From Scyliorhinus canicula (Eukaryota), in the NCBI RefSeq assembly GCF_902713615.1, contig NC_052164.1:40473091-40537090 (forward strand): a DNA stretch of 64,000 bases, in the 5' to 3' direction. Position numbers and translations under genes: made by a program. Every line of letters begins with the position of its first letter. The stretch's first letter is position 1. The notes beneath the pieces are model-generated. The model searched no databases. It had not been told where the DNA came from and saw only the letters and a program-made list of their open reading frames with translations. Shown here one piece after another: positions 336 to 32,959 of the stretch.

Positions 336-2160
336 ATGAATTTTCCAAGTGTTTGGGGCGTGTGGAGTTTGTTAATCCTGTCAGCCGGGGTACTGAGCCA
401 GGACTGCCAGAGGCTGCAGTTACAGGAAGTCTTCAACAAGGATGCTCAAAATTCACTGAAGATCATGGTGAGTTTGTGCAGAGATCCGGTGATGGGAGTA
501 ACGAATTTTAACTCGCAGATCCTTGGGAGAATCCCCGATTCAATCCGCGTTCTTAGAATAATGTAGAACATCTTCGTAATGGAATACACCATGTAGTATT
601 CAAATGTGGGAGAAATAGTGTGAAAATGATACTAAGAATGATTCGGTTCAATGGCCAGTTAAATATGTTGTAGGTCAAATCTTTAAGCAAATTGTTGAAT
701 GTCTGTTCCGCTTTTGGGGAGAATAATTTCTGAGAAAGTGTGCTTCGAGGTTCTTCTGACATAATTCTGTCCTGTTGTAGGGAGGACCCTTTCCATTGGA
801 GTGCAAAACAACGAGAGAATCTCTGAGAACCAAATCCCTGAACCTGCACCATCTCGTCAAGAGGTTACAGGTGAGTGTGCACGTTGTAAACTCTCTGACC
901 ATCCTGCTAATACTGTCAGGCGTAACAGTATGTGGGGAATGCGCGTGATCCCCAACAATGAGAACAATGTTGATTTCCGTAAAATTCCTACAGTGCAGAA
1001 GGGGGCCATTCTGCCCAATGAATCTGCACTGACCCTCCGAAAGAGCGCCCCACCCAGGTGCACAATCCCAGCCCGATAACATCCCTGGACACCAAGGGAT
1101 AATTTAACGGCCAATCCACCTAACCTGCATATTTTAGGACTGTGGGGGAAACCAGAGCACCCAGAGGAACCCCACCCACATACCGAAAGAACATTCAAAC
1201 TCCACACAGTCAACCAACGTCGGAATCGAACCCAGGCTCCCGTGGTAACCACTGCGCCACTGAGAAATAATATTGTTGTGCCTTTTGGGGGATGAACTTT
1301 GTAACCTGTAATCCTGCTCAGACTGGAAGGTGTAATAGTTATGTGTGTTTGTGTGGTGGTGGTAGTGGGCGCGCCGGGGTGGGGGTGGTGGGTGGGGTGG
1401 TGTACCCACCTCCGCAAAAATAAGAACCATAAATTCAACATTTTAGCGTTGAGCCATTGGGGGGACAGATCGACCAGCTGCTGACCAGTTTGATATTATT
1501 CTCTCTATTTACCCCAAATTGCTAACAGTATCAGGTTAGCTAATCAAAGGGGAAGATACCAGCAACCAATTTGAGACTGATCAATATTGTCACCAGCAAT
1601 AACGATGCCGACTTTTTAAAATCGAGCTTCTTACTGATTTACCGATGCACATGTCAATTAAAATGACCAGTTCAAGGAGAAATATCCTCCCTAATGTCGT
1701 TATGTATATTTTCCTCAGACACAGGACAGGATCCAGATTGTCCATCAGACCCTACGTCACATCAGCAAGATCTACAGCATGAACCTGGGCTCAGTCACAT
1801 GGGCCCGTGACAAGGTGGAACATTTCCGGCTTCTCCTGGACCGACAGCTCAGTGAGCTGCAAGAATGTGTCAGGAAACCGGGATCCAGTCTGAGGAGAAA
1901 CTCCGCCATTCACAATTACTTTCGGAAACTGGAAAAGTTTCTCAATCAGGAGGTGGGACAATTGATAAGTGCCTGAGTGATTACTGGCTTGTGGAACCAT
2001 TTCAACCTATTGGAATCTGTTCATTCTCTAATACATTTTCCCCAATGTTTCCATTTTTCAGGGATTCAGTGACTGTGCCTGGGAAATAATCCGCACTGAG
2101 ACCAGGGCCCGATTACAACAGCTCCTTTTCATAACGGCACAAATCAGCAGAAGGAATTAA
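336..2160 (+). CDS. Type I interferon, copy 1 (4 exons: 336-467, 781-870, 1719-1952, 2062-2160; 184 aa)
   Basis: GT-AG phase-0 introns join MNFPSVWGVWSLLILSAGVLSQDCQRL...KIM / GGPFPLECK...RLQ / TQDRIQIV...LQECV...YFRKLEKFLNQE / GFSDCAWEIIRTETRARLQQLLFITAQISRRN*. It has a signal peptide, 4 mature Cys, and the MGGxFPxEC, YFxKL and CAWE type I IFN motifs. Confidence 0.95.
990..1262 (-). mobile_element. Degenerate tRNA-derived V-SINE (HE1-like) in IFN intron 2, present in all five copies
   Basis: Reverse complement of the V-domain (gggttcctctgggtgctctggtttcccccacagtcc...gcaggttaggtggattggcc) plus a B-box-like ggttcgattcc. Boundaries are approximate. Confidence 0.75.
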
Positions 2161-2414
2161 AGATTTCCCATCGATATATTTAATGAAGATTGGGAGCAAT
2201 TGTTATTTATTTAAACATTATTTAAACAACCTTTTAATATTTAAGTTATGATTCCAATATTTATTTCTGGATGCACTGCATGTTCATGTTTAATTTTTTT
2301 AAATATTGGTAATTGCGACAGGCGGTGCGAGAAATATATTTATCGCAGTTTTTGTTCCATAATAGTCTGTATCTGGTGTCAAAGTTGTGCCCCGAATTGA
2401 AGTTTCACAATAAA
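2161..2414 (+). promoter_or_regulatory. IFN copy 1 3'UTR with AU-rich elements and polyadenylation signal
   Basis: About seven ATTTA pentamers, including a TTATTTATT nonamer, followed by AATAAA at 2409-2414. Equivalent UTRs follow each copy. Confidence 0.75.
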
Positions 2415-5400: not shown

Positions 5401-5617
5401 CTATTCCATAATATCGTAAAATCTATCACATAGATCTAACACTCTAACCAAAAAAAAAACCCACGGTCGTTGGGAAGCGGGTGCAGGGGCCTGTTGGGAA
5501 GGTGGGTGAGTGCCTTTAAATTTGCTTACCTTTCAGCGGGAGCAGGGTTTGAGGGAATATCAGGTAAGCTCTTCCTTTCTTTTTCTTTTTCTTGTTTTTT
5601 TTTTAAATCTAGAGGTG

Positions 5618-6546
5618 ATGTCAGGGAAGGCAGTACAGTGCTCCTCCTGCAGAATGTTTGCGGTGAGGGACACCGTCAGTGTCCCTGCTGATTTCAGCTA
5701 TGGGAAGTGCACCCAACTCCAGCTCCTCAAAAACCATGTTAGGGACCTGGAGCTTGAGCTGGATGAACTTCGGATCATTCGGGAGGCAGAGGGGGTCATA
5801 GATAGAAGCTTCAGGGAGGTAGTTACGCCAAAGAATAAAGATAGATGGGTGACGGTGAGAGGGGCTGGGGGTAAGCAGTCAGTACAGGGATCCCCTGTGG
5901 TCGTTCCCCTTAGTAACAAGTATACCGTTTGGATACTTGTGGGGGGGGGGGGACTTACCAGGGATAAGCCATGGGGTACGGGCCTCTGGCACGGAGTCTG
6001 TCCCTGTTGCTCAGAAGGGAAGGGGGGAAAGGAGTAGAACATTAGTAATTGGGGACTCAATAGTCAGGGGCACAGATAGGAGATTTTGTGGGAGCGAGAG
6101 AGACTCACGTTTGGTATGTTGCCTCCCAGGTGCAAGGGTACGTGATGTCTTGGATCATGTTTTCCGGGTCCTTAAGGGGGAGGGGGAGCAGCCCCAAGTC
6201 GTAGTCCACATTGGCACTAACGACATAGGTAGGAAAGGGGATTAGGATGTCAGGCAGGCCTTTATGGAGCTAGGTTGGAAGCTCAGAGCGAGAACAAACA
6301 GACTTGTTATCTCTGGGTTGTTGCCCATGCCACGTGATAGTGAGACGAGGAATAGGGAGAGAGAGCAATTAAACACGTGGCTACAGGGATGGTGCAGGCA
6401 GGAGGGATTCAGATTTCTGGATAACTGGGGCTCTTTCTGGGGAAGGTGGGACCTCTATAGACCGGATGGTCTACATCTGAACCTGAGGGGCACCAATATC
6501 CTGGGGGGGGGGGGGAGATTTGTTAGTGCTCTTTGGGGGGATTTAA
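5618..6546 (+). pseudogene. CR1 ORF1 (zinc-finger/leucine zipper plus SGNH esterase), disrupted
   Basis: MSGKAVQCSSCRM...KCTQLQLL...LELELDEL, then GDSIVRG, HIGTND and DGLHLN motifs. There are frameshifts at G homopolymers (~5941 and ~6503) and an in-frame TAG at 6243-6245. The end is approximate. Confidence 0.85.
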
Positions 6547-6659
6547 ACTCATTCAGCAGGGGCATGGGAACCTGGATTGTAGTTTTGGGGTACGGGAGAT
6601 TGAGAGTATAGAGGTCAGGAGCACAGATTTGACTTTCCAGGAGGGTGCCAGTGTTCAGG

Positions 6660-9433
6660 TAGGTGGTTTGAAGTGTATCTTCTTCAATGCCAGGAGTATA
6701 CGAAATAAGGTAGGGGAACTGGCAGCATGGGTTGGTACCTGGGACTTCGATATTGTGGCCATTTCAGAGACATGGATAGAGCAGGGACAGGAATGGTTGT
6801 TGCAGGTTCCGGGGTTTAGGTGTTTTAGTAAGCTCAGAGAAGGGGGCAAAAAAGGGTGAGGTGTGGCGCTGCTAGTCAAGGACAGTATTATGGTGGCGGA
6901 AAGGATGCTAGATGGGGACTCTTCTTCCGAGGTAGTATGGGCTGAGGTTAGAAACAGGAAAGGAGAGGTCACCCTGTTGGGAGTTTTCTATAGGCCACCT
7001 AATAGTTCTAGGGATGTAGAGGAAAGGATGGTGAAGATGATTCTGGAAAAGAGCGAAAGTAACAGGGTAGTTGTTATGGGAGACTTTAACTTTCCAAATA
7101 TTGACTGGAAAAGATATAGTTCGAGTACATTAGATGGGTCGTTCTTTGTACAATGTGTGCAGGAGGGTTTCCTGACACAATATGTTGACAGGCCAACAAG
7201 AGGCGAGGCCACATTGGATTTGGTTTTGGGTAATGAACCAGGCCAGGTGTTAGATCTGGAGGTAGGTGAGCACTTTGGAGACAGTGACCACAATTCGGTG
7301 ACCTTTACGTTAGTGATGGAAAGGGATAAGTGTACCCCGCAGGGCAAGAGTTATAGCTGGGGGAAGGGCAATTATGATGTCATTAGACATGACTTAGGAT
7401 GTGTAGGTTGGAGAAGTAGGCTGCAAGGGTTGGGCACACTGGACATGTGGAGCTTGTTCAAGGAACAGCTATTGCGTGTTCTTGATAAGTATGTACCAGT
7501 CAGGCAGGGAGGAAGGGGTAGAGCGAGGGAACCGTGGTTTACCAAAGAATTGGAATCTCTTGTTAAGAGGTAGAAGGCCTATGTGAAGATGAGGCGTGAA
7601 GTTTCAGTTGGGGCGCTTGATAGTTACAAGGAAGCGAGGAAGGATCTAATGAGAGAGCTAAGACGAGCAAGGAGGGGACATGAGAAGTCTTTGGCAGGTA
7701 GGATCAAGGAAAACCCAAAAGCTTTCTATAGGTATGTCAGGAATAAAAGAATGACTAGGGTAAGAGTAGGGCCAGTCAAGGACAGTGGTGGGAAGTTGTG
7801 TGTGGAGGCTGAGGAGATAATCGAGATACTAAATGAATACTTTTCGTCAGTATTCACTCAGGAAAAAGATAATGTTGTGGAGGAGAATGCTGAGACCCAG
7901 ACTATTAGAATAGATGGCATTGAGGTGCGTAGGGAAGAGGTGTTGGCAATTCTGGACAAGATGAAAATAGATAAGTCCCCGGGGCCTGATGGGATTTATC
8001 CTAGGATTCTCTGGGAAGCCAGGGAAGAGATTGCTGAGCCTTTGGCTTTGATTTTTATGTCATCATTGGCTACAGGAATAGTGCCAGAGGACTGGAGGAT
8101 AGCAAATGTGGTCCCTTTGTTCAAGAAGGGGAGTAGAGATAACCCCGGTAACTATAGGCCGGTGAGCCTCACATCTGTTGTGGGTAAAGTCTTGGAGAGG
8201 ATTATAAGAGATACGATTTATAATCATCTAGACATGAATAATATGATTAGGGATAGTCAGCATGGTTTTGTGAAGGGTAGGTCATGCCTCACAAACCTTA
8301 TCGAGTTCTTTGAGAAGGTGACTGAACAGGTAGACGAGGGTAGAGCAGTTGATGTGGTGTATATGGATTTCAGTAAAGCATTTGATAAGGTTCCCCACGG
8401 TCGGCTATTGCTGAAAATACGGAGGCTGGGGATTGAGGGTGATTTAGAGATGTGGATCAGAAATTGGCTAGTTGAAAGAAGACAGAGGGTGGTGGATGAT
8501 GGCAAATGTTCAGAATGGAGTTCAGTTATGAGTGGCGGACAACAAGGATCTGTTCTGGGGCCGTTGCTGTTTGTCATTTTTATAAATGACCTAGAGGAGG
8601 GCACAGAAGGTTGGGTGAGTAAATTTGCAGACGACACTAAAGTCGGTGGAGTTGTAGACAGTGTGGAAGGATGTTGCAGGTTACAGAGGGACATATATAA
8701 GCTGCAGAGCTGGGCTGAGAGGTGGCAAATGGAGTTTAATGTAGAGAAGTGTGAGGTGATTCACTTTGGAAAGAATAACAGGAATGCGGACTATTTGGCT
8801 AATGGTAAAATTCTTGGTAGTGTGGATGAGCAGAGGGATCTCGGTGTCCATGTACATAGATCCCTGAAAGTTGCCACCCAGGTTGATAGGGTTGTGAAGA
8901 AGGCCTATGGTGTGTTGGCCTTTATTGGTAGAGGGATTGAGTTCCGGAGCCCTGAGGTCATGTTGCAGCTGTACAAAACTCTGGTACGGCCGCATTTGGA
9001 GTATTGCGTACAGTTCTGGTCGCTTCATTATAGGAAGGACGTGGAAGCTTTCGAACGGGTGCAGAGGAGATTTACCAGGATGTTGCCTGATATGGAGGGA
9101 AAATCTTATGAGGAAAGGCTGATGGACTTGAGGTTGTTTTCGTTAGAGAGAAGAAGGTTAAGAGGTGACTTAATAGAGGCATACAAAATGATCAGAGGGT
9201 TAGATAGGGTGGACAGTGAGAGCCTTCTCCCGCGGATGGAGGTGGCTAGCACGAGGGGACATAGCCTTAAATTGAGGGGTAATAGATATAGGACAGAGGT
9301 CAGAGGTGGGTTTTTTACGCAAAGAGTGGTGAGGCCGTGGAATGCCCTACCTGCAACAGTAGTGCACTCGCCAACATTGAGGGCATTTAAAAGTTTATTG
9401 GATAAGCATATGGGTGATAATGGCATAGTGTAG
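6660..9433 (+). pseudogene. CR1 ORF2 (APE endonuclease plus reverse transcriptase), two in-frame stops
   Basis: NARSIRNK, SETW, YRPP, GDFN and SDH endonuclease motifs; KSPGPDG, YRPVSL, DFSKAFD, QGSVLGP and FADD RT motifs. Stops at 6857-6859 and 7571-7573; 7583-9433 is open. Confidence 0.92.
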
Positions 9434-10731
9434 GTTAGATTGCCTTTAGTTTTTGACTTCCCATGTCGGTGCAACATCGTGGGCCAAAGGGCCTGTACTG
9501 CGCTGTATCGTTCTATGTTCTATGTTCTATAGTTGATCAATGGCAAAACATCCACAAGCTCCTTAGGTAGAAAATGTCAACGTTTTGCACCATTTTCTTT
9601 CTTTCATGGGATGTGTCCATCATTTGTTTTTCATCCTTAACTATCCTTGGATGTGGTGGTACTGACAATTGAATGGGCTGCGTGGCCATTTCAGAGGGCA
9701 GTTCGGAGCCGACCACATTGCTGTCGGTCAGGAGTCACATGCAGGCCGCACAAGCTGAGAATAGCAAATTCCCGCTTCCATGAAGGCCATTGGTGTATCT
9801 GATGTGATTTTATGACAACTAAGGACGGGTTAATGGTGACCCTTAATGCGATTGCCTTTCAATTTCAGATGCATTAATTGAATGTATATTCCATTATGTC
9901 TCCAGTTCATTAGTCTGGCCCTCTAGATTACTGCTCCAGAGAAATTGCCACCACACAATCATTCCCCGTACGTTTCGTACTTTAGAAATTTCCCCTCAAC
10001 TTCTTGATAACTGCGGCAGTTACACTTCGTTCGAGATTCTCCGGCAGTGAGATACTTGCCCAATGTTTACCTTATCAAAGGCTCACACATTTTACAAGTT
10101 CCAATGGTAACACCTCTCATTCTCTTAAATTCCACGGATTGTATGTGCATCTTCTCAATCTCCCATGCCAGGAGTAGGTTTGCTCGTATATCCTTGCTTA
10201 GGTAAAGAGACAGAAACTAATACTTTAAACATTCGAGTCAGTGCGCACGCTGGCAGTGACCTGAGCAGTTTCCCATGAAAGATTGTTCCGCATTTTAGGG
10301 TCTTAAAATATATGAACTGATTTTTAAAAAGCAATTCCTTATCATTGCCTGGAGTTCAAAGGAGCAACAGATGTGAACATTTGGGCAAAAACTTTTGATA
10401 TCTATGAATATTTTCGAACCCTAATTTATAAGAGAGAATTCCCTCCCTGTTGATTAAGCAAAAAGTGAAAAAGGTTTCAAATTGAAGAAGTCACTGATTG
10501 AAAGAGGTTAAAAGAGTCCCTGAAAACACATCGCGGTTAGAAGCAAAATCGATCCCTTTCTGTAACGTCAAAGGAATATCCTGGTTTACATCTTAAAATG
10601 GACACAGCTCACCCAGGAGGAATATTCCTCAGTCCAACAGCGAAGGAGTTCAGCTCGTGTTAAAATTGCGTTCGGCGCTGAACCCGGCCCAGCCACGTTC
10701 TATCATTCCTGATCTTTGCTCTTGTTTAAAC

Positions 10732-12564
10732 ATGAATTTTCCAAGTGTTTGGGGCGTGTGGACTTTGTTAATCTTGTTACCCGGGGTCTTGAGCCAGGAC
10801 TGCCAGAGGCTGCAGTTACAGGAAGTCTTCAACAAGGATGCTCAAAATTCCTTGAAGATCATGGTGAGTTTGTGCAGAGATCCGGTGATGAGAGTAACGA
10901 ATTTTAACTCGCAGATCCTCGGGAGAATCCCCGATTCAATTCGCGTTCTTAGAAAAATGTAGAACATCTCCGTAATGGAATACACCATGTAGTATTCAAA
11001 TGTGGGAGAAATAGTGTGAAAATGATACTAAGAATGATTCAGTTCAATGGCCAGTTAAATATGTTGTAGGTCAAATCTTTATGCAAATTGTTGAATGTCT
11101 GTTCCGCTTTTGGGGAGAATAATTTCTGAGAAAGTGTGCTTCGAGCTTGTTCTGACATCATTCTGTCCTGTTGTAGGGAGGACCCTTTCCATTGGAGTGC
11201 AAAACAACGAGAGAATCGCTGAGAACCAAATCCCTGAACCTGCACCATCTCGTCAAGAGGTTACAGGTGAGTGTGCACGTTGTAAACTCTCTGACCATCC
11301 TGCTAATACTGTCAGGCGTAATAGTCATGTGGGGAAGGCAGCGAGATCCTCAACAATGAGAACAATGTTGATTTCCGTAAAATTCCTACAATGCAGAAGG
11401 GGGCCATTCATCCCAAGGAATCTGCACTGACCAGCTGAAAGAGCGGCCCACCCTGGTCCACTCCCCAGCCCCATAACATCCCTGGACAGCAAGAGGTAAT
11501 TTAACGGTCAATCCACCTAACCTGCACACCTTTGGACTGTGGGAGGAAACTGGAGCACCCAGAGGAACCCCACGCACATACCGGGAGAACATGCAAACTC
11601 CACACAGCCAAAGTCGAAATCGAACCCAGGTTCCTGTGCTAACCACTGTGCCACTGAGAAATTCTAATGTTGAGCCTTTTGGGGATGAACTTTGTAACCT
11701 GTAATCCTGCTAATACTGGAAGGCGTAATAGTCATGTGTGTGTGTGGTGGTGGTGGTGGTGGGGGCGCCGGGGTGGGGTGGGGGGAGGAGGGCGGTGTAC
11801 CCACCTCCGCAAAAATACGAACCATGAGTCCAAAATTTTAATGTTGAATGATTGGGGGGGGGGGGGGGGGGCAGACGGACCAGCTGCCGAACAGTTTAAT
11901 ATTCTTCTCTCCATTTACCCCAAATTGCTAACAGTATCAGGTTAGCTAATCAAAGGGGAAGATACCAGTAACCAATTTGAGATTGATCAAATTGTCACCA
12001 GCAATAGCGATGCCGACCATTTCAAATCGAGCTCCTTACAGATTTACCGATGCACGTGTCAATTAAAATAACCAGTTCAAGGAGAAATATCCTCTCTAAT
12101 GTCATTGTGTATATTTTCCTCAGACACAGGACAGGATCCAGATTGTCCATCAGACCCTACGTCACATCAGCAAGATCTACAGCATGAACCTGGGCTCAGT
12201 CACCTGGGCCCGGGACAAGGTGGAACATTTCCGGCTTCTCCTGGACCGACAGCTCAGTGAGCTGGAAGAATGTGTCAGGAAACCGGGATCCAGTCTGAGG
12301 AGAAACTCCGCCATTCATAATTACTTTCGGAAACTGGAAAAGTTTCTCAATCAGGAGGTGGGACAATTGATAAGTGCCTGAGTGATTACTGGCTTGTCGA
12401 TCATTTCAACCCATTGGAATCTGTTCATTCTCTAATACATTTTCCCCAATGTTTCCATTTTTCAGGGATTCAGTGACTGTGCCTGGGAAATAATCCGCAC
12501 TGAGACCAGGGCCCGATTACAACAGCTCCTTTTCATAACGGCACAAATCAGCAGAAGGAATTAA
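10732..12564 (+). CDS. Type I interferon, copy 2 (exons 10732-10863, 11177-11266, 12124-12357, 12466-12564; 184 aa)
   Basis: Same splice sites and motifs as copy 1. Signal peptide ...WTLLILLPGVLS; ELEEC; CAWE intact. Confidence 0.95.
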
Positions 12565-13665
12565 AGATTTCCCATCGATATATTTAATGAAGATTGGGAG
12601 CAATTGTTATTTATTGAAACATTATTTAAACAACCTTTTAATATTTAATTTATGATTCCAATATTTATTTCTGGATGCACTGTATGTTCATGTTTAATTT
12701 TTTTTAAATATTGGTAATTGCGACAGGCGGTGCGAGAAATATATTTATGGCAGTTTTTGTTCCACAATAGACTGTATCCGATGGCAAAGATGTGCCCCGA
12801 ATTGAAGTTTCACAATAAATATTTTGAACTTTGAATTTTATGATGTAATCTTCGTTTCCACATCTATGTTCGTGCCCCTTCGATGCTGTTTTGTTCATCT
12901 TGACTGAAATTTTCAATTCATTGGATGATGGAGGCTGTGCGACCCAGGAGGGAGCATCAATAGCTCCGAGCCTGATGTCCCGGTGTTCAAGTCGCACCTC
13001 CTGTCAGTTTCCTTGTTTCACTCTGCAATGTTTGATTTCTTGAAATCATGTGTAAAGGCAAACAAACATTTATTGGACAGGTCCCGACCATTGAAAATTG
13101 TGATTTTTTTACGGTTCGGTAAATTTTGATTCAGGATGAAACACTTTGGCTAACTTTTACCCGCTACAAAGCGATTGAATTATTCACAACACAAAGTCTA
13201 CTAAATAGAAAGAAAGCAAAATTATTGTCGATAAAAAGTAACAAAATCAGAGCCCATTTAAACCAGTAACAGCCTCAATATATCGGGAAATACAAGTATG
13301 ACCAGAAAACATCAGAGAAAACTGGCTGTGAATCTTAGATTCCCTTTCAGTCGAGGGCAGTCTAACAGAATCAACAGATATTAAGCGGGAGCTAAATTGT
13401 TTTGTTGCCATCAATCGACCAGATGTGAACTGATCGTTTTCGGGAGAATGTTTTCCCATTGTTTTCTGACAATGTAACCATTCTTTTTATGGTGGGAGGG
13501 ATTTCCATTGGGAATTCATCTCATTGCCATGTCCACACACTGATGATCATCTCTTCGCAATAAATGTCATCGTGCAAGCATTTTGTGAGATCCAGTGAAA
13601 CGCAATATAACTGCCGTCTGCATTAATCCCCGAATTTCCCTCCAGTGTTACATTATTTTGCTTAG

Positions 13666-13773
13666 AAAATGAAATGAAAATCGCTTATTGTCACGAGTAG
13701 GCTTCAATGAAGTTACTGTGAAAAGCCCCTAGTCGCCACATTCAGGCGCCTGTTCGGGGAGGCTGGTCCGGGT
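13666..13773 (-). mobile_element. ~110 bp SINE/LINE 3'-tail insertion shared only by units 2 and 3
   Basis: aaaatgaaatgaaaatcgcttattgtcacgagtaggcttcaatgaagttactgtgaaaagccc is absent at the matching site of units 1, 4 and 5. Confidence 0.8.
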
Positions 13774-16700: not shown

Positions 16701-17147
16701 TTGTACCGCATTTTAGGGTCAAAAATATATAAAATGATTTTTAAAAAACAATTCCTATCAGAGCCTGGAGTGCAAAGGGGCAACAGATGTGAACTTTTGG
16801 GCAAAAGCTTTTGATATCGATGAATATTTTCGCATCCTAACTTATAAGAGAGAATTCTCTCCCTGTTAATTGAGCAGAAAGTGAAAAAGATTTCAAATTG
16901 AAGAAGTCACTGATGGAAAGAGGTTAAAAGATTCCCTGAAAACACATCGCGGTTAGAAGCAAAATCGATCCCTTTCTGTAACGTCAAAGGAATATCCTGG
17001 TTTACACCTTAAAATGGACACAGCTCACCCAGGAGGAATACTCCTCAGTCCAACTGCGAAGGAGTTCAGGTCGTGTGAATATTGCGTTCGGCGCTGAAGC
17101 CGGTCCAGCCACTTTCTATCATTTCTGATCTTTGCTCTTGTTTAAAC

Positions 17148-18977
17148 ATGAATTTTCCAAGTGTTCGGGGCGTGTGGACTTTGTTAATCTTGTTACCCGG
17201 GGTCTTGAGCCAGGACTGCCAGAGGCTGCAGTTACAGGAAGTCTTCAACAAGGATGCTCAAAATTCCCTGAAGATCATGGTGAGTTTGGACAGAGATCCG
17301 GTGATTAGAGTAACGAATTTTAACTCGCAGATCCTCGGGAAAATCCCGGATTCAACCGTTCTGAGAAAAATGTAGAACATCTCCGTGATGGAATACACCA
17401 TGTAGTATTCAAATGTGGGAGGAATCGTGTGAAAATTATATGAAGAGTGATTCAGTTCTATGGCCAGTTAAATATGTTGTAGGTCAAATCTTTAAGCAAA
17501 TTGTTGAATGTCTGTTCCGCTTTTGGGGAGAATAATTTCTGAGAAAGTGTGCTTCGAGCTTGTTCTGACATTATTCTGCCCTGTTGTAGGGAGGACCCTT
17601 TCCATTGGAGTGCAAAACAACGAGAGAATCGCTGAGAACCAAATCCCTGAACCTGCACCATCTCGTCAAGAGGTTACAGGTGAGTGTGCACGTTGTAAAC
17701 TCTCTGACCATCCTGCTAATACTGTCAGGCGTAATAGTCATGTGGGGAAGGCAGCGAGATCCTCAACAATGAGAACAATGTTGATTTCCGTAAAATTCCT
17801 ACAATGCAGAAGGGGGCCATTCATCCCAAGGAATCTGCACTGACCAGCTGAAAGAGCGGCCCACCCTGGTCCACTCCCCAGCCCCATAACATCCCTGGAC
17901 AGCAAGAGGTAATTTAACGGTCAATCCACCTAACCTGCACACCTTTGGACTGTGGGAGGAAACTGGAGCACCCAGAGGAACCCCACGCACATACCGTGAG
18001 AACATGCAAACTCCACACAGCCAAAGTCGAAATCGAACCCAGGTTCCTGTGCTAACCACTGTGCCACTGAGAAATTCTAATGTTGAGCCTTTTGGGGATG
18101 AACTTTGTAACCTGTAATCCTGCTAATACTGGAAGGCGTAATAGTCATGTGTGTGTGTGGTGGTGGTGGTGGTGGGGGCGCCGGGGTGGGGTGGGGGGAG
18201 GAGGGCGGTGTACCCACCTCCGCAAAAATACGAACCATGAGTCCAAAATTTTAATGTTGAATGATTGGGGGGGGGGGGGGGGGGCAGACGGACCAGCTGC
18301 CGAACAGTTTGATATTCTTCTCTCCATTTACCCCAAATTGCTAACAGTATCAGGTTAGCTAATCAAAGGGGAAGATACCAGTAACCAATTTGAGATTGAT
18401 CAAATTGTCACCAGCAATAGCGATGCCGACCATTTCAAATCGAGCTCCTTACAGATTTACCGATGCACGTGTCAATTAAAATAACCAGTTCAAGGAGAAA
18501 TATCCTCTCTAATGTCATTGTGTATATTTTCCTCAGACACAGGACAGGATCCAGATTGTCCATCAGACCCTACGTCACATCAGCAAGATCTACAGCATGA
18601 ACCTGGGCTCAGTCACCTGGGCCCGGGACAAGGTGGAACATTTCCGGCTTCTCCTGGACCGACAGCTCAGTGAGCTGGAAGAATGTGTCAGGAAACCGGG
18701 ATCCAGTCTGAGGAGAAACTCCGCCATTCATAATTACTTTCGGAAACTGGAAAAGTTTCTCAATCAGGAGGTGGGACAATTGATAAGTGCCTGAGTGATT
18801 ACTGGCTTGTCGATCATTTCAACCCATTGGAATCTGTTCATTCTCTAATACATTTTCCCCAATGTTTCCATTTTTCAGGGATTCAGTGACTGTGCCTGGG
18901 AAATAATCCGCACTGAGACCAGGGCCCGATTACAACAGCTCCTTTTCATAACGGCACAAATCAGCAGAAGGAATTAA
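17148..18977 (+). CDS. Type I interferon, copy 3 (exons 17148-17279, 17590-17679, 18537-18770, 18879-18977; 184 aa)
   Basis: Intact ORF. W7R in the signal peptide; mature peptide identical to copy 2. Confidence 0.95.
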
Positions 18978-20071
18978 AGATTTCCCATCGATATATTTAA
19001 TGAAGATTGGGAGCAATTGTTATTTATTGAAACATTATTTAAACAACCTTTTAATATTTAATTTATGATTCCAATATTTATTTCTGGATGCACTGTATGT
19101 TCATGTTTAATTTTTTTTAAATATTGGTAATTGCGACAGGCGGTGCGAGAAATATATTTATGGCAGTTTTTGTTCCACAATAGACTGTATCCGATGGCAA
19201 AGATGTGCCCCGAATTGAAGTTTCACAATAAATATTTTGAACTTTGAATTTTATGATGTAATCTTCGTTTCCACATCTATGTTCGTGCCCCTTCGATGCT
19301 GTTTTGTTCATCTTGACTGAAATTTTCAATTCATTGGATGATGGAGGCTGTGCGACCCAGGAGGGAGCACCAATAGCTCCGAGCCTGATGTCCCGGTGTT
19401 CAAGTCGCACCTCCTGTCAGTTTCCTTGTTTCACTCTGCAATGTTTGATTTCTTGAAATCATGTGTAAAGGCAAGCAAACATTTATTGGACAGGTCCCGA
19501 CCATTGAAAATTGTGATTTTTTTTTACGGTTCGGTGAATTTTGATTCAGGATGAAACACTTTGGCTAACTTTTACCCGCTACAAAGCGATTGAATTATTC
19601 ACAACACAAAGTCTACTAAATAGAAAGAAAGCAAAATTATTGTCGATAAAAATAACAAAATCAGAGCCCATTTAACAGCCTCAATATATCGGGAAATACA
19701 AGTATGACCAGAAAAAATCAGAGAAAACTGGCTGTGAATCTTAGATTCCCTTTCAGTCGAGGGCAGTCTAACAGAATCAACAGATATTAAGCGGGAGCTA
19801 AATTGTTTTGTTGCCATCAATCGACCAGATGTGAACTGATCGTTTTCGGGAGAATGTTTGCCCATTGTTTTCTGACAATGTAACCATTCTTTTTATGGTG
19901 GGAGGGATTTCCATTGGGAATTCATCTCATTGCCATGTCCACACACTGATGATCATCTCTTCGCAATAAATGTCATCGTGCAAGCATTTTGTGAGATCCA
20001 GTGAAACGCAGTATAACTGCCGTCTGCATTAATCCCCGAATTTCCCTCCAGTGCTACATTATTTTGCTTAG

Positions 20072-20178
20072 AAAATGAAATGAAAATCGCTTATTGTCAC
20101 GAGTAGGCTTCAATGAAGTTACTGTGAAAAGCCCCTAGTCGCCACATTCAGGCGCCTGTTCGGGGAGGCTGGTACGGG
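20072..20178 (-). mobile_element. Second copy of the ~110 bp SINE/LINE 3'-tail insertion (unit 3)
   Basis: Nearly identical to 13666-13773 and at the same unit position. Confidence 0.8.
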
Positions 20179-23100: not shown

Positions 23101-23552
23101 AAAGATTGTACCGCATTTTAGGGTCAAAAATATATGAAATGATTTTTAAAAAACAATTCCTATCAGAGCCTGGAGTGCAAAGGGGCAACAGATGTGAACT
23201 TTTGGGCAAAAGCTTTTGATATCGATGAATATTTTCGCATCCTAACTTATAAGAGAGAATTCTCTCCCTGTTAATTGAGCAGAAAGTGAAAAAGGTTTCA
23301 AATTGAAGAATTCACTGATGGAAAGAGGTTAAAAGATTCCCTGAAAACACATCGCTGTTAGAAGCAAAATCGATCCCTTTCTGTAACGTCAAAGGAATAT
23401 CCTGGTTTACACCTTAAAATGGACACAGCTCACCCAGGAGGAATACTCCTCAGTCCAACTGCGAAGGAGTTCAGGTCGTGTGAATATTGCGTTCGGCGCT
23501 GAACCCGGTCCAGCCACTTTCTATAATTTCTGATCTTTGCTCTTGTTTAAAC

Positions 23553-25371
23553 ATGCATTTTCCAAGTGTTTGGGGCGTGTGGACTTTGTTAATCTTGTTA
23601 CCCGGGGTCTTGAGCCAGGACTGCCAGAGGCTGCAGTTACAGGAAGACTTCAACAAGGATGCTCAAAATTCCCTGAAGATCATGGTGAGTTTGGACAGAG
23701 ATCCGGTGATTAGAGTAACGAATTTTAACTCGCAGATCCTCGGGAAAATCCCGGATTCAACCGTTCTGAGAAAAATGTAGAACATCTCCGTGATGGAATA
23801 CACCACGTAGTATTCAAATGTGGGAGGAATCGTGTGAAAATTATATGAAGAGTGATTCAGTTCTATGGCCAGTTAAATATGTTGTAGGTCAAATCTTTAA
23901 GCAAATTGTTGAATGTCTGTTCCGCTTTTGGGGAGAATAATTTCTGAGAAAGTGTGCTTCGAGCTTGTTCTGACATTATTCTGTCCTGTTGTAGGGAGGA
24001 CCCTTTCCATTGGAGTGCAAAACAACGAGAGAATCTCTGAGAACCAAATCCCTGAACCTGCACCATCTCGTCAAGAGGTTACAGGTGAGTGTGCACGTTG
24101 TAAACTCTCTGACCATCCTGCTAATACTGTCAGGCGTAATAGTCATATGGGGAAGGCAGCGAGATCCTCAACAATGAGAACAATGTTGATTTCCGTAAAA
24201 TTCCTACAATGCAGAAGGGGGCCATTCATCCCAAGGAATCTGCACTGACCAGCTGAAAGAGCGGCCCACCCTGGTCCACTCCCCAGCCCCATAACATCCC
24301 TGGACAGCAAGAGGTAATTTAACGGTCAATCCACCTAACCTGCACACCTTTGGACTGTGGGAGGAAACCGGAGCACCCAGAGGAACCCCACGCACATACC
24401 GGGAAAACATGCAAACTCCACACAGCCAAAGTCGAAATCGAACCCAGGTTCCTGTGCTAATCACTGTGCCACTGAGAAATTCTAATGTTGAGCCTTTTGG
24501 GGATGAACTTTGTAACCTGTAATCCTGCTAATACTGGAAGGCGTAATAGTCATGTGTGTGTGGTGGTGGTGGTGGTGGTGGGGGCGCCGGGGTGGGGTGG
24601 GGGGAGGAGGGCGGTGTACCCACCTCCGCAAAAATAAGAACCATGAGTCCAAAATTTTAATGTTGAATGATTGGGGGGACAGACGGACCAGTTGCCGAAC
24701 AGTTTGATATTCTTCTCTCCATTTACCCCAAATTGCTAACAGTATCAGGTTAGCTAATCAAAGGGGAAGATACCAGTAACCAATTTGAGACTGATCAAAT
24801 TGTCACCAGCAATAGCGATGCCGACCTTTTCAAATCGAGCTCCTTACAGATTTACCGATGCACGTGTCGATTAAAATAACCAGTTCAAGGAGAAATATCC
24901 TCTCTAATGTCATTGTGTATATTTTCCTCAGACACAGGACAGGATCCAGATTGTCCATCAGACCCTACGTCACATCAGCAAGATCTACAGCATGAACCTG
25001 GCCTCAGTCACCTGGGCCCGGGACAAGGTGGAACATTTCCGGCTTCTCCTGGACCGACAGCTCAGTCAGCTGGAAGAATGTGTCAGGAAACCGGGATCCA
25101 GTCTGAGGAGAAACTCCGCCATTCATAATTACTTTCGGAAACTGGAAAAGTTTCTCAATCAGGAGGTGGGACAATTGATAAGTGCCTGAGTGATTACTGC
25201 TTGTCGATCATTTCAACCCATTGGAATCTGTTCATTCTCTAATACATTTTCCCCAATGTTTCCATTTTTCAGGGATTCAGTGACTGTGCCTGGGATATAA
25301 TCCGCACTGAGACCAGGGTCCGATTACAACAGCTCCTTTTCATAACGGCACAAATCAGCAGAAGGAATTAA
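23553..25371 (+). CDS. Type I interferon, copy 4 (exons 23553-23684, 23995-24084, 24932-25165, 25273-25371; 184 aa)
   Basis: Intact ORF with substitutions N2H, QEV>QED, NLG>NLA, SEL>SQL, CAWE>CAWD and TRA>TRV. Confidence 0.95.
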
Positions 25372-28300
25372 AGATTTCCCATCGATATATTTAATGAAGA
25401 TTGGGAGCAATTGTTATTTATTTAAACATTATTTAAACAACCTTTTAATATTTAATTTATGATTCCAATATTTATTTCTGGATGCACTGTATGTTCATGT
25501 TTAATTTTTTTTTAATATTGGTAATTGCGACAGGCGGTGCGAGAAATATATTTCTGGCAGTTTTTGTTCCACAATAGACTGTATCCGATGGCAAAGATGT
25601 GCCCCGAATTGAAGTTTCACAATAAATATTTTGAACTTTGAATTTTATGATGTAATCTTCGTTTCCACATCTATGTTCGTGCCCCTTCGATGCTGTTTTG
25701 TTCAACTTGTCTGAAATTTTCAATTCATTGGATGATGGAGGCTGTGCGACCCAGGAGGGAGCACCAATAGCTCCGAGCCTGATGTCCCGGTGTTCAAGTC
25801 ACACCTCCTGTCAGTTTCCTTGTTTCACTCTGCAATGTTTGATTTCTTGAAATCATGTGTAAAGGCAAACAAACATTTATTGGACAGGTCCCGACCATTG
25901 AAAATTGTGATTTTTTTTACGGTTCGGTGAATTTTGATTCAGGATTAAACACTTTGGCTAACTTTTACCCGCTACAAAGCGATTGAATTATTCACAACAG
26001 AAAGTCTACTAAATAGAAAGAAAGCAAAATTATTGTCGATAAAAAGTAACAAAATCAGAGACCATTTAAACCAGTAACAGCCTCAATATATCGGGAAATA
26101 CAAGTATGACCAGAAAAAATCAGAGAAAACATTGCTGTGAATCTTAGATTCCCTTTCAGTCGAGGGCAGTCTAACAGAATCAACAGATATTAAGCGGGAG
26201 CTAAATTGTTTTGTTGCCATCAATCGACCAGATGTGAACTGATCGTTTTCGGGCCAATGTTTGCCCATTGTTTTCTGACAATGTAACCATTCTTTTTATG
26301 GTGGGAAGGATTTCCATTGGGAATTCATCTCATTGCCATGTCCACACACTGATGATCATCTCTTCGCAATAAATGTCATCGTGCAAGCATTTTGTGAGAT
26401 CCAGTGAAACGCAGTATAACTGCCGTCTGCACTAATTCCCGAATTTCCCCCCAGTGCTACATTATTTTGCTTAGTTTGGTCTTATTGGAGCACATACAAC
26501 AATGCGTAACATTAAAGCAACATCATTTTAAAATATGTATACTATTGTGAATACATATAGTGAATAGAAATTCGGCACTGCCACATTATTGTCATTTTCC
26601 ATCTATTTTGGCCATCTACAATTTTCACTGCTTGTTGCCCCTCCCCCCATTATCGACACAACAATATAGGATTGGTTTATGGAAAGGTATTTGCCCTCTG
26701 CAGTCCAGAATAGTGAAGTAAAGTCGCCATAGCCTCAGATGACCACAGGCTGCTTTGAGGGGGAGAGCTGGCTGGTGGTGACTTAACCTGAGGATCACTA
26801 CATCTCAGTTAGCGGCAAGGTTGAGAAGGGAAGTGGTGGTGGGGGAAGGGGAGGGTGGTTAATGAATAGTGCTGGACTACAACCAACCAAAGGACGCTGC
26901 TCCGCAACCATCCCTGGACTCAATGGTGAAGCAAGCAGGTCAGTCAGAGCGAAATAAAGGTCTGAAAATGTTGCCACTTTCAGCCAGAACTACCAGGTGG
27001 ATGATCCGTTTTGGCCTCTCCCAGAGGTTCCGAGCACCACAGATGTCAGTCTTCAACTAATTCCATCCACTGCAGGCTGAACGTACTGTGTACAGCAAAG
27101 GCTATGAGTCCCGGATAACATCCTGAACGAAGAGGACTGAAGGTTCGATCCTCCGGAGCTAGTCACGGTCCTAGCCAGGATGCTCCACGTTCACTATCAT
27201 CGCACTAACCCATCATCCCCATCTCTGTTGTCCTCAATGGTTCCCTGTCCCTTCATATACCATGTTTAAAACCCATGTCTCATCCACACTTCCTCAGTGG
27301 CTTTTCCTTGCCTTATATGGATTCGTTGGTCTTCTGAGATGGGACTGCCCTTCCTGTCACTTCAGTACTGGCGATAGAACTACAAGCTCCCTTCGGCTTT
27401 CTCTTTCTACAGTCCAATCCTGATATTCCTGTGCATATCAATCTCACACAACCCCTCATCAAATTTGTCACCACCCTCCTCTTCCGCAACCCTATGATTG
27501 GGCATTCATTTATCAACATAGTGTGTCAATTTGTAAAGGTGCCTGAGGGGGCATTTAAATCTTAAATGAATCACAAAATGCAAATTGTTGTGCTGTACCT
27601 GCCAGCTGACATCACTGAACCATAAGGAACATGTTTCTCACGAAGAAACTTTTAAAAATTACATTTTTAAGGGAACACTAATGAGTTAATATTGTCAAAT
27701 TCTTCACTTACTATTTTGTAATGAACATAAATAATATGGAATATTTGACCATAACCAACCTTATGCATGAAATGCCTTACGTAGTACAGTTGTAAGGCAC
27801 TGCGAACACATAACACACATTGAGGAATTTATTTTTGAAACGTAAAACAAATTCATATCTTGACGGTAGTTCTACTCTGGCTATTTTTTCCCGTTTCATT
27901 TAGAATACGCAATTACTTTTTTCCCAAGTAAGGGCAATTTAGCTTGGCTAATCCACCTACCCTGGACATCTTTTTGTGTTGTGCGGGTGAGACCTACCCA
28001 GACACGGAGAGAACATGTAAACTCCATATGGACAGTGAATGCTGTGAACAAGATGCTGTGACTAAGTCATACTGGTGTGCCCAGTTGCTATTCTTGACGT
28101 GTGGAAATGGTTTCCCATTTGCTTGCAGGATAAAATAAACAATTACTAATTGTGACTTGAAATGAGGTAGCTGCATTGCAATCATCTCTCCAGAGATTCA
28201 ATGATACCCTCGTTTTGAATCCCTTACAATTCTCTTAAATGTATTTTTCAATATCTCAACACTTCCAAGCGTTTGGCCATGATGAAAGGCAAAGAATGGA

Positions 28301-29833
28301 GAAATAAGAGTCGTGAAAGACAATGTTCATTGAATAGTTTCTACTGGAGAGAAACGGGGAGCATCAATGATGAGACCCAAGAGATAGAAGACACATATCG
28401 TGTAAATGTGGTGCAAAAACTGTCACAATGATTCAGAAACACAGTAACATTGGCTAATTATATTATGTAATTGAAACTATTAAATATGTTTATTTGACTA
28501 AAATGTAGAATATAAGCAAGATTAGCAGGAGACATCCATTTAGTCCTTTCAGTCAACTGTCTATGGCAGATCTTCTATGTCTCATCTCCCTTAACGATTC
28601 CCACATTCCATAATATCGTAAAATCTAACATATAATTGATCAATGGCTCAACATCCAGAAACTCCTCGGGTAGAACATTTCAAAGTTTTGCAGCATTTTC
28701 ATTATTTCATGGGAAGTGTCCATAATTTATTGTTCATCCTTAGCTATCCTTGGATGTGGTGGTACTGACAATTGAATGGGCTGCGTGGCCATTTCAGAGG
28801 GCAGTTCGGAGCCGACCACATTGCTGTCGGTCAGGAGCCACATGCAGGCCGCACCAGCTGAGAATAGCAAATTCCCGCTTCCATGAAGGACATTGGTGCA
28901 TCTGATGTGATTTTATGATAACTAAGGACAGTTTAATGGTAACCCTTAATGCGATTGCTTTTCAATTTCAGGTGCATTAATTGAATGTATATTCCATTAT
29001 GTCTCCAGTTCTTTAGCCTGCCCCACCAGATTACTGCTCCAGAGAAATTGCCACCACACAATCATTCCCCGTACGTTTCGTGCTTTAGAAATTTCCCCTC
29101 AACTTCTTTATAACTGCGGCAGTTACACTTTGTTCGAGATTCTCCGGCAGGGAGATACTTGCCCAATATTTATCTTATCAAATGCTTAAACATTTTACAA
29201 GTTCCAATGGTATCACCTCTCATTCTCTTAAATTCCACGGATTGTATGTGCATCTTCTCAATCTCCCATCCCAGGAGTAGGTTTGCTCGTGTATCCCTGC
29301 TTAGGTAAAGAGACAGAAACTAATACTTTAAGCATTCTATTAAATGCGCACGCACGCAGTGACCTGAGCAGTTTCCCATGAAAGATTGTTCCGCATTTTA
29401 GGGTCATAAAATATATGAAATGATTTTTAAAAAACAATTCCTATCAGAGCCTGGAGTGCAAAGGGGCAACAGATGTGAACTTTTGGGCAAAAGCTTTTGA
29501 TATCGATGAATATTTTCGCATCCTAACTTATAAGAGAGAATTCTCTCCCTGTTAATTGAGCAGAAAGTGAAAAAGGTTTCAAATTGAAGAAGTCACTCAT
29601 GGAAAGAGGTTAAAAGATTCCCTGAAAACACATCGCGGTTAGAAGCAAAATCGATCCCTTTCTGTAACGTCAAAGGAATATCCTGGTTTACACCTTAAAA
29701 TGGACACAGCTCACCCAGGAGGAATACTCCTCAGTCCAACTGCGAAGGAGTTCAGGTCGTGTGAATATTGCGTTCGGCGCTGAACCCGGTCCAGCCACTT
29801 TCTATAATTTCTGATCTTTGCTCTTGTTTAAAC

Positions 29834-31653
29834 ATGAATTTTCCAAGTGTTTGGGGCGTGTGGACTTTGTTAATCTTGTTACCCGGGGTCTTGAGCCAGG
29901 ACTGCCTGAGGCTGCAGTTACAGGAAGTCTTCAACAAGGATGCTCAAAATTCCCTGAAGATCATGGTGAGTTTGGACAGAGATCCGGTGATTAGAGTAAC
30001 GAATTTTAACTCGCAGATCCTCGGGAAAATCCCGGATTCAACCGTTCTGAGAAAAATGTAGAACATCTCCGTGATGGAATACACCATGTAGTATTCAAAT
30101 GTGGGAGGAATCGTGTGAAAATTATATGAAGAGTGATTCAGTTCTATGGCCAGTTAAATATGTTGTAGGTCAAATCTTTAAGCAAATTGTTGAATGTCTA
30201 TTCCGCTTTTGGGGAGAATAATTACTGAGAAAGTGTGCTTCGAGCTTGTTCTGACATTATTCTCCCCTGTTGTAGGGAGGACCCTTTCCATTGGAGTGCA
30301 AAACAACGAGAGAATCGCTGAGAACCAAATCTCTGAACCTGCACCATCTCGTCAAGAGGTTACAGGTGAGTGTGCACGTTGTAAACTCTCTGACCATCCT
30401 GCTAATACTGTCAGGCGTAATAGTCATGTGGGGAAGGCAGCGAGATCCTCAACAATGAGAACAATGTTGATTTCCGTAAAATTCCTACAATGCAGAAGGG
30501 GGCCATTCATCCCAAGGAATCTGCACTGACCAGCTGAAAGAGCGCCCCCCCCCCCTGGTCCACTCCCCAGCCCCATAACATCCCTGGACAGCAAGAGGTA
30601 ATTTAACGGTCAATCCACCTAACCTGCACACCTTTGGACTGTGGGAGGAAACCGGAGCACCCAGAGGAACCCCACGCACATACCGGGAAAACATGCAAAC
30701 TCCACACAGCCAAAGTCGAAATCGAACCCAGGTTCCTGTGCTAATCACTGTGCCACTGAGAAATTCTAATGTTGAGCCTTTTGGGGATGAACTTTGTAAC
30801 CTGTAATCCTGCTAATACTGGAAGGCGTAATAGTCATGTGTGTGTGGTGGTGGTGGTGGTGGGGGCGCCGGGGTGGGGTGGGGGGAGGAGGGCGGTGTAC
30901 CCACCTCCGCAAAAATAAGAACCAGGAGTCCAAAATTTTAATGTTGAATGATTGGGGGGACAGACGGACCAGCTGCCGAACAGTTTGATATTCTTCTCTC
31001 TATTTACCCCAAATTGCTAACAGTATCAGGTTAGCTAATCAAAGGGGAAGATACCAGTAACCAATTTGAGACTGATCAAATTGTCACCAGCAATAGCGAT
31101 GCCGACCTTTTCAAATCGAGCTCCTTACAGATTTGCCGATGCACGTGTCAATTAAAATAACCAGGTCAAGGAGAAATATCCTTTCTAATGTCATTGTGTA
31201 TATTTTCCTCAGACACAGGACAGGATCCAGATTGTCCATCAGACCCTACGTCACATCAGCAAGATCTACAGCATGAACCTGGCCTCAGTCACCTGGGCCC
31301 GGGACAAGGTGGAACATTTCCGGCTTCTCCTGGACCGACAGCTCAGTCAGCTGGAAGAATGTGTCAGGAAACCGGGATCCAGTCTGAGGAGAAACTCCGC
31401 CATTCACAATTACTTTCGGAAATTGGAAAAGTTTCTCAATCAGGAGGTGGGACAATTGCTAATTGACTGAGTGATTACTGGCTTGTAGATCATTTCAACC
31501 CATTGGAATCTGTTCATTCTCTAATACATTTTCCCCAATGTTTCCATTTTTCAGGGATTCAGTGACTGTGCCTGGGAAATAATCCGCACTGAGACCAGGG
31601 CCCGATTACAACAGCTCCTTTTCATAACGGCACAAATCAGCAGAAGGAATTAA
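29834..31653 (+). CDS. Type I interferon, copy 5 (exons 29834-29965, 30276-30365, 31213-31446, 31555-31653; 184 aa)
   Basis: Intact ORF with DCQR>DCLR, NLA and SQL; CAWE intact. Confidence 0.95.
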
Positions 31654-32959
31654 AGATTTCCCATCGATATATTTAATGAAGACTGGGAGCAATTGTTATT
31701 TATTTAAACATTATTTAAACAATTTTTTGATATTGAAGTTTTGATTCCAATATTTATATCTGGCTGCATTGTGTATTCATATTTATTTTTTTAAATAATA
31801 TTGGTAATTGCGAGAGACGGTGCGAGAAATATATTTATAACCGTTTTTGTTCCACAATAGGCTGTATCTGATGGCAAATTTGTGCCCCGAATTACAGTTT
31901 CACAATAAATATTTCGAACTTTGAATTTTATGATGTAGTCTTCGTTTCCACATCTATATTCGTGCTCCTCCGGTGTGTTGTTGTTGATTTTGTCTGAGAT
32001 TTTCAATTAATTGGATGATGGAGGCTGTGCGGCCCAGGAGGGAGCACCAATAGCTCCGAGCCTGATGTCCCGGGGTTCAAGTCCCACCTCCTGTCAGTTT
32101 TCTTGTTTGACTCTGCAAAGTTTGATTTGTTGAAATGATGCGTAAATATAAACAAACATTTATTGGAGAGACGCCGACAATTGAAAAGTTAGATTTTTAA
32201 CGGTTGTTTAATTTTGATTCAGAATTAAACACTTTGGCTAAATTTTACCCGCTGCAAAGCGATTGAATTATTCACAACACGAAGTCAACTAAATGTAAAG
32301 AAAGTAAAATTATTGTCGATAAAAGGTAATAAATTCAGAGCCCATATAAACCAGTAAGAACTTCAATATGTCGAGAAATATAAGTATGATCAGAATAGAT
32401 CAGAGATACTGGCTGTGAATCTTAGATTTGCATTCAGTGCGGGCAGTCTAACAGAATCAGCAGATGTTAAGAGGGAACTAAATTGTTTTGTTGTCGTCAG
32501 TCATTACTGATGTGAACGGATTGTTTTTGGGAGAATGTTGTCCCAGTATCTCCTGACAATGTAACCATTCTATTTGTGCTGAGAGAGATTTCCATTGGGG
32601 ATTCATCGCATTGCCCTGTCCACACACAGTTGATCATCTCTTTGCAATACATGTCACCGCACAAGCATTTTGTGAAATCCAGCGAAACGCTGTATAACTC
32701 GTCTGCACTAATTCTCGAATTTCCCTCCAGTGCGACATTGTTTTGCTCAATTTGATCTTTTTGGAGCACATACAACAATGCGTAACATTAAAGCAACATC
32801 ATTTTTAAGTGTGAGAAATCTGCACTGCCATTTTAGTCTAACTTTCCATATATTTTGGCCATCTCGGATTGTTCGCTGCTTGGTGCCCCCCTCCCCCCCC
32901 CCCCCCACCCCCGCCCTCTCCCCCCATCGACACAACAATGTAGGATTTGTTATTCGATG

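Follow-up and report, generated by a model that had tools for sequence, protein, structure and literature searches.

Catshark type I interferon genes form a head-to-tail array of near-identical four-exon copies, one of them chimeric

The type I interferon (IFN) genes of cartilaginous fishes have been described as having four exons and three introns, canonical intron 3 having apparently been lost (Secombes and Zou 2017, PMC5332411), and IFN1 and IFN2 of Squalus acanthias and a "cartilaginous fish lineage-specific expansion" were reported by Redmond et al. 2019 (PMC6640115). Four cysteines are held to be the ancestral state of these proteins (PMC5332411, PMC6640115), and the cysteine groups may not be phylogenetic (PMC6640115). 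Here we analyze a stretch of 64,000 nucleotides from the small-spotted catshark, Scyliorhinus canicula (contig NC_052164.1, positions 40,473,091 to 40,537,090 of the forward strand; hereafter the window), in which five near-identical type I IFN genes extend from the ATG of copy 1 at position 336 to the last base of the copy 5 stop codon at 31653. We consider it very likely that these genes are a head-to-tail array of at least five functional-looking elasmobranch four-cysteine IFN1 paralogues that has grown and been homogenised by recombination and that mainly serves to raise IFN output. Earlier publications cover the gene family, its design with four exons and four cysteines, its tandem clustering in cartilaginous fish, and its lineage-specific expansion, and the locus itself is an ordinary, already annotated part of the catshark interferon locus. 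What is added here is the unit-level anatomy of the array, the recombinant nature of copy 2, and the existence of parallel species-wise clusters in other sharks. No paper was retrieved when the literature was searched for the name of the catshark assembly in combination with interferon, and Redmond 2019 was the sole result for recent studies of shark IFN1.

A comparison of the catshark genes with the described systems shows both shared features and some clear disparities. The IFN1 and IFN2 proteins of S. acanthias (PMC6640115 supplement) share with the catshark proteins an MxFPSVW leader, the motifs SQDCQRLQL, MGGP.P..C, QTLRH..KIYSMNLGSVTW, ELEECV, and FSDCAWEIIR, four cysteines, and a length of 184-186 amino acids, and belong to the same IFN1 lineage. 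The sequences in that study are derived from transcriptomes and come without genomic arrangement, whereas the catshark array and its recombination history are visible here; the catshark entry in the study (Scca_1) is only partial and represents a different IFN1. The elephant shark, Callorhinchus milii (PMC5332411), possesses a tandem type I IFN cluster whose genes likewise have four exons, appear to have lost canonical intron 3, and include 4-Cys forms. Three genes were described for that cluster, and the elephant shark relatives stand much further from the catshark protein (e.g., P0038, about 34% identity), in contrast to the catshark copies, which are 95-99% identical to one another and clearly young or homogenised. 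In the mammalian IFNA cluster many near-identical 4-Cys type I IFN genes also lie side by side and group species-wise in trees, and duplication is combined with gene conversion as in the catshark array; gene conversion in IFNA clusters has been discussed previously (PMC3161012, PMC4221479). Unlike the catshark genes, which have three phase-0 introns and are arranged in regular 6.4 kb units, the mammalian IFNA genes are intronless descendants of a retrogene. Finally, the five-exon IFN genes of bony fish (7wkh, 3piv, and the P0054 gene model) match the catshark genes in a 132-nt exon 1 and in introns 1, 2, and 4, which align in phase 0, but they possess an extra phase-0 intron right after Cys3, so that 150+75 nt correspond to the single 234-nt catshark exon, and their products are 2-Cys proteins only about 30% identical to those of the catshark.

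Self-BLAST of the window, which is free of N runs, revealed five head-to-tail units on the same strand with 91-98% nucleotide identity. Exon mapping and translation placed one gene in each unit, all on the plus strand, with exons of 132, 90, 234, and 99 nt and a coding sequence (CDS) of 555 nt, consisting of 184 codons followed by TAA. All introns are in phase 0, and all three carry GT-AG borders in five of five copies. The genes and the two features needed to follow the spacing of the units are as follows:

336-2160, plus strand: IFN copy 1, exons 336-467, 781-870, 1719-1952, and 2062-2160; intact 184-amino-acid open reading frame (ORF); equals XP_038634707 (P0005)
10732-12564, plus strand: IFN copy 2, exons 10732-10863, 11177-11266, 12124-12357, and 12466-12564; equals XP_038634708 (P0004); chimeric unit
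17148-18977, plus strand: IFN copy 3, exons 17148-17279, 17590-17679, 18537-18770, and 18879-18977; equals XP_038634709 (P0014)
23553-25371, plus strand: IFN copy 4, exons 23553-23684, 23995-24084, 24932-25165, and 25273-25371; equals XP_038634710 (P0006)
29834-31653, plus strand: IFN copy 5, exons 29834-29965, 30276-30365, 31213-31446, and 31555-31653; equals XP_038634711 (P0001)
5433-9527, plus strand: long interspersed nuclear element (LINE, a non-LTR retrotransposon), 4095 nt, in the spacer of unit 1 only, where it appears as a gap in the unit alignment
32808: 3' end of the array, where the similarity of unit 5 to the other units ends in self-BLAST, about 1.15 kb past its stop codon

Distances from ATG to ATG along the array are 10396, 6416, 6405, and 6281 nt. 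The 10.4 kb first interval is due to the LINE in unit 1, and without those 4095 nt it measures 6301 nt; the 6.3-6.4 kb period given in the initial annotation is therefore right apart from this insertion, with spacings of 6.28-6.42 kb elsewhere. The CDSs differ from one another at 2-17 of 555 nt, and exon mapping and translation found no frameshift, premature stop, or broken splice site in any of the five copies. That annotation is thus correct in its reading that type I IFN genes with introns have expanded in tandem here, and its statement that no copy is pseudogenised holds for all five ORFs, their splice sites, and their stop codons.

A search seeded from the exon-1 reading frame retrieved "interferon beta-like [Scyliorhinus canicula]", and the five products encoded in the window correspond residue for residue to RefSeq XP_038634707, 708, 709, 710, and 711, models that lie on the 106.7-Mb chromosome of GCA_902713615.2. 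The genes are already public gene models, listed under generic automatic names, and orthologues from Squalus were published in 2019; the locus cannot be presented as new, as had been done at first. The protein cluster formed at 90% contains a sixth S. canicula member, XP_038634706, of 176 amino acids, which is not part of the window and around which no further gene is called within 10 kb. Because the edge of the window sets the count and this sixth member lies beyond it, five is a lower bound: the window does hold five intact copies, as first proposed, but five is not the full count.

Assignment of the genes to the type I IFN family is supported at several levels. Exon 3 alone scored 38.9-40 bits against Pfam PF00143 (interferon alpha/beta), where the cut-off is 26.8, and the full-length proteins carry PF00143 in precomputed annotation. 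In a sequence search of the PDB all matches at E < 1e-3 were type I IFNs, the best being grass carp IFNa (7wkh, E 1.6e-15) and zebrafish IFN1 (3piv, 3.1e-13), with human IFN-alpha subtypes next. From an alignment of 25 relatives AlphaFold2 produced an all-helical model with a mean predicted local distance difference test score (pLDDT) of 82.7 and a predicted template modeling score (pTM) of 0.79. Foldseek comparison of this model to the PDB returned type I IFNs at ranks 1-41, with a TM of 0.8 on the target for both 7wkh and 3piv, while IL-27, IFN-lambda, and IL-22 entered the list only at E >= 0.2. Cysteines occupy residues 24, 52, 124, and 157 in five of five copies; the alignment columns of C24 and C124 are at least 90% conserved, C157 falls within a CAW motif, and disulphides C1-C3 and C2-C4 are the predicted pairing. 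We refer to the genes as "4-Cys" rather than "group II", a label that rests on the cysteine count and not on a vertebrate-wide tree.

The five-exon relative P0054 (locus L001) has exons of 132, 75, 150, 75, and 108 nt separated by introns that are all in phase 0. In a pairwise protein alignment its introns 1, 2, and 4 coincide with the three catshark introns, and its intron 3 maps to the middle of catshark exon 3, directly behind the third cysteine. This bears out the proposal that exon 3 of the catshark genes covers canonical exons 3 and 4, an arrangement that had already been published (PMC5332411).

The units are not equally similar to one another. Whole-unit divergence is 1.3% between units 2 and 3, 1.9% between units 3 and 4, and 2.6% between units 2 and 4, compared to about 6% between unit 1 and units 2-4 and 5.4-8.5% between unit 5 and the others. 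Units 1 and 5 thus stand 5.4-9% from the rest, within a span of 1.3-9% over all unit pairs, and the 3' flank of unit 5 is 12-13% diverged from those of the other units. Divergence is also uneven along the sequence, as the difference between units 2 and 3 amounts to 5-6% in the 5' flank and intron 1 and drops to 0-0.3% over the remainder of the gene, starting at exon 2. The change takes place at a breakpoint in intron 1 of copy 2:

11046-11166, no strand assigned: this breakpoint, attributed to recombination or conversion; the left side groups with copy 1 and the right side with copy 3

Up to position 11046, 24 of 26 informative sites split copies {1,2} from {3,4,5}, whereas only 1 of 46 does so after it (Fisher 1e-15), and to the right of this position the dominant splits are {2,3} and {1,5}. 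Copy 2 is a chimera, because the informative-site split switches sharply in intron 1, and its mosaic points to unequal crossing-over or gene conversion, of which it is the expected footprint. On their divergence, the inner copies are young or homogenised, and the edge copies are much older and keep older states; for the inner copies, recent duplication and recent homogenisation look alike in these data. The description of the expansion as recent consequently applies to copies 2-4 (1.3-2.6% unit divergence) and not to copies 1 and 5 (5.4-9%, with 12-13% in the 3' flank of copy 5), and part of the similarity that had been ascribed to recent duplication stems instead from recombination or gene conversion, as seen in the mosaic divergence and the switch in intron 1. 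Runs of a second organism contain 12-24% of the sampled 31-mers of copy 2, which would equate to about 93-95.5% identity if the differences are evenly spread. If this organism is the congener, the inner copies would be younger than the species split and the outer copies of roughly the same age as that split.

Assemblers can mis-size regions such as this one, with 6 kb tandem repeats at 94-98% identity, and the five copies could in principle be an assembly artefact, produced by duplication of a haplotype or by over-expansion of a locus with one or two copies. Read support was sought in DNA data in the form of Logan contigs, rather than raw reads, of two samples from two studies, in which word depth is not a copy-number measure. 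Two types of intron 1, that of copy 2 and that of copies 3/4/5, occur in both samples, with word depths of 3.1 versus 9.9 in one and 5.8 versus 14.2 in the other; the resulting ratio of 1:2.5-3 is suggestive and agrees with the 1:3 of the assembly. An artefact would have to recur as at least two unit types in samples of different origin, at about the depth ratio that the assembly predicts. It would also have to account for unit divergence of 1.3-9%, which is far above allelic and structured as a mosaic, for a 4.1 kb LINE present in unit 1 alone, and for the annotation of 4 to 10 close paralogues, several of them adjoining, in each of three other shark assemblies. Given the structured divergence, the private LINE, and the neighboring paralogues in other sharks, we regard an artefact as very unlikely. 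Haplotype duplication in particular was rejected on the basis of unit divergence far above the allelic level, the mosaic structure, and the LINE private to unit 1.

At the protein level, the mature products of the five copies are 97-100% identical, with 7 of about 163 mature positions variable, and the codons that differ between paralogues include 7, 25, 32, 98, 120, 122, 160, and 168. Copies 2 and 3 encode the same mature protein and are distinguished solely by W7R in the signal peptide, the mature protein of copy 1 is one residue away from these two, and copy 4 has the most private amino-acid changes (N2H, V32D, E160D, and A168V). Synonymous divergence reaches 7.5% (copy 1 versus copy 2) while non-synonymous divergence is near 1%, and the ratio of non-synonymous to synonymous differences (pN/pS) is 0.05-0.4 in most copy pairs and well below 1 in all but the pair of copies 3 and 4. 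On this pattern, the mature proteins are mostly under purifying selection. Near-identity of the mature proteins, together with the mostly low pN/pS, fits the dosage-type expansion envisaged in the initial annotation better than it does diversification into subtypes.

Putative regulatory features are likewise shared among the copies:

65-74, plus strand: IRF-type element GAAAGTGAAA, 271 nt upstream of the copy 1 ATG; a pattern match of putative function
2161-2414, plus strand: 3' untranslated region (UTR) of copy 1 up to AATAAA, 70% A+T, with seven ATTTA pentamers
12565-12819, 18978-19232, 25372-25626, and 31654-31909, plus strand: equivalent 3' UTR stretches of copies 2-5, with the same features

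The GAAAGTGAAA element recurs at 16877, 23282, and 29563 for copies 3-5, also at -271, and elements of this type have 18 matches in the window compared to 4.6 expected. The 340-nt region upstream of the genes shows 98% mean column identity across a promoter alignment of the five copies, and AATAAA is found about 250 nt past the stop codon in all of them. IRF inducibility and mRNA instability are established for interferon genes generally, and the motifs suggest that the catshark copies would likewise be IRF-inducible and give rise to short-lived mRNAs.

Several observations weigh against an array of five equivalent, active genes. The pair of copies 3 and 4 has a pN/pS of 1.4-1.95, on 1 synonymous and 5-7 non-synonymous changes, so there may be some diversification of copy 4 relative to copy 3. 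Copy 2 carries AAAAGTGAAA at the position aligned to GAAAGTGAAA, so that the first half-site of its IRF element has A in place of G, and the copies may thus differ in inducibility. Among the indexed RNA runs the gene was found in none, and in two raw RNA runs searched with copy 2 (one single-cell, one oligo-dT) the exons were essentially empty and only the repeat in intron 2 was covered; a single stray read near the border of exon 3 and intron 3 is not evidence of expression. These runs were unstimulated, and empty exons are what uninduced interferon genes are expected to look like.

Two other accounts of the array draw on these observations. One is that the copies are becoming distinct subtypes, as the mammalian IFN-alpha subtypes are, rather than forming a dosage block. 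Besides the elevated pN/pS of copies 3 and 4 and the four private replacements in copy 4, this account could appeal to the promoters, which form two haplogroups (copies 1-2 and copies 3-5) that could mean different regulation. The counts behind the elevated ratio are tiny, however, every other pair falls well below 1, and copies 1, 2, and 3 have between them at most a one-residue difference in the mature protein; we consider diversification unlikely. The second account is that most copies are transcriptionally dead or redundant relics whose ORFs are kept by conversion from one active copy, without any gain in dosage. It gains from the lack of RNA support for any copy, from the weakened IRF half-site of copy 2, and from the fact that conversion or recombination is clearly active and can keep ORFs open without selection on each copy. 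Relics would not, however, be expected to have kept the promoter, the splice sites, the polyadenylation signal, and the ATTTA-rich 3' UTR in five of five copies, nor to combine synonymous divergence to 7.5% with non-synonymous divergence near 1% even for copy 1. For copy 1 versus copy 2, a pair whose divergence conversion has not erased, selection explains the data better, and the relic account is quite unlikely.

For the array of functional-looking paralogues that we favor, we infer secretion, receptor use, inducibility, and a dosage benefit. Each gene would produce a helical class II cytokine, secreted as a protein of about 163 residues, which would signal via shark homologues of IFNAR1 and IFNAR2 and thereby induce antiviral genes. 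Transcription would be silent at rest and turned on by IRF3/7-type factors acting through the conserved GAAAGTGAAA, and the ATTTA-rich 3' UTR would render the mRNA short-lived. Unequal crossing-over and/or gene conversion between 6.4 kb units would supply both the growth and the homogeneity of the array, the main effect of which is probably more interferon from near-identical genes and not new specificities.

Near-identical IFN1 sets were also identified in other sharks, with 8 members in Scyliorhinus torazame, 9 distinct proteins under 10 accessions in Heterodontus francisci, and 4 members in Cetorhinus maximus. Like the catshark genes, these belong to the same IFN1 lineage, have consecutive RefSeq accessions, and include adjoining genes. 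Both spacing and orientation depart from those in the catshark: genes are about 7.5 kb apart in S. torazame, one or more of them inverted, while the spacing is about 11.6 kb in Heterodontus and exceeds 10 kb in Cetorhinus. The S. torazame and H. francisci assemblies, which are independent, place adjacent IFN genes 7.5-11.6 kb apart. Protein trees unite the five window copies in a single clade (support 100/92) to the exclusion of the S. torazame copies, and the copies of horn shark and of basking shark are likewise grouped by species. The trees recovered these species-wise clusters but not the order of duplication, as the differences are too few. A broader reading, which we advance tentatively and hold to be slightly less probable than its opposite, is that the array is an actively recombining, copy-number-variable cassette in which crossing-over keeps making chimeras like copy 2, so that copy number differs among catsharks, and that several shark lineages independently reached the same dosage-array solution. 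If true, concerted evolution would be superimposed on the birth-death pattern that has been described for IFN1 over deep time. An older S. torazame assembly yields partial or fused models (P0019, P0022), which hint, indirectly, at the collapse of such arrays in short-read assemblies that had been foreseen for the catshark. Three "hypothetical proteins" from teleost assemblies of Aldrovandia, Silurus, and Synaphobranchus (P0020, P0030, and P0092), of 500-950 amino acids with 4-7 interferon-like stretches each, seem to be tandem interferon genes that automatic gene calling has joined.

The significance of these findings beyond good annotation is small. The catshark is a laboratory model for early vertebrate immunity, and what is called "the" catshark IFN1 comprises six or more near-identical genes in addition to divergent neighbors, which has to be taken into account in primers, knock-outs, and expression counts. 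In the chromosome-level assembly of the catshark, a near-identical IFN block is resolved that transcriptome work (Redmond 2019) could not separate, and exact paralogue-specific sites are now at hand for expression studies. The array also provides a nucleotide-level record of shark interferon arrays homogenised by recombination, as mammalian IFNA clusters are.

The window contains further sequences related to the array. A divergent four-exon type I IFN lies at 53156-54548 (plus strand), where exon-like open stretches encode MALPCIWRFCTALVLLSGGLSLGCERL..., ...QVIRQTLDQINKTFSQNVNTAPWDHALL...LNECAG..., and RFSACAWKLIGSRTRASLQM..., and a GAAAGTGAAA motif is found upstream of it at 52769. At codon 7 of copy 2 (position 10750), DNA contigs of both samples contain a G where the window copies have T and copy 3 has C; the source of this G may be a near-identical copy outside the window, or it may be an allele.

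Repeats occur both within and beyond the units. The LINE in unit 1 has frame-broken ORFs for an APE endonuclease (PF14529/PF03372) and a reverse transcriptase (PF00078), and since it is present only in unit 1 it must have been inserted after that unit was duplicated. The repeat in intron 2 is of a different kind:

11324-11659, no strand assigned: high-copy interspersed repeat resembling a short interspersed nuclear element (SINE), in intron 2; present in all five copies

The same translated stretch of this repeat is found in every copy, and the repeat predates the unit duplications. Its contig word depth reaches about 1e6, and it is abundant on both strands in RNA runs. Adjoining it at 11732-11827 is a low-complexity stretch rich in G and T, which has no contig coverage and varies in length among the copies. 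An Rfam search at the gathering threshold and a tRNA scan of positions 1-33000 returned nothing. Retroelement ORFs lie 3' of the array on the minus strand at 34234-37455 and 58825-61362; the first of these intervals contains a reverse transcriptase (34875-36590), the second an APE-type endonuclease (60574-61362). Between 34 and 40 kb the GC content rises to 55-63% with a strongly negative GC skew.

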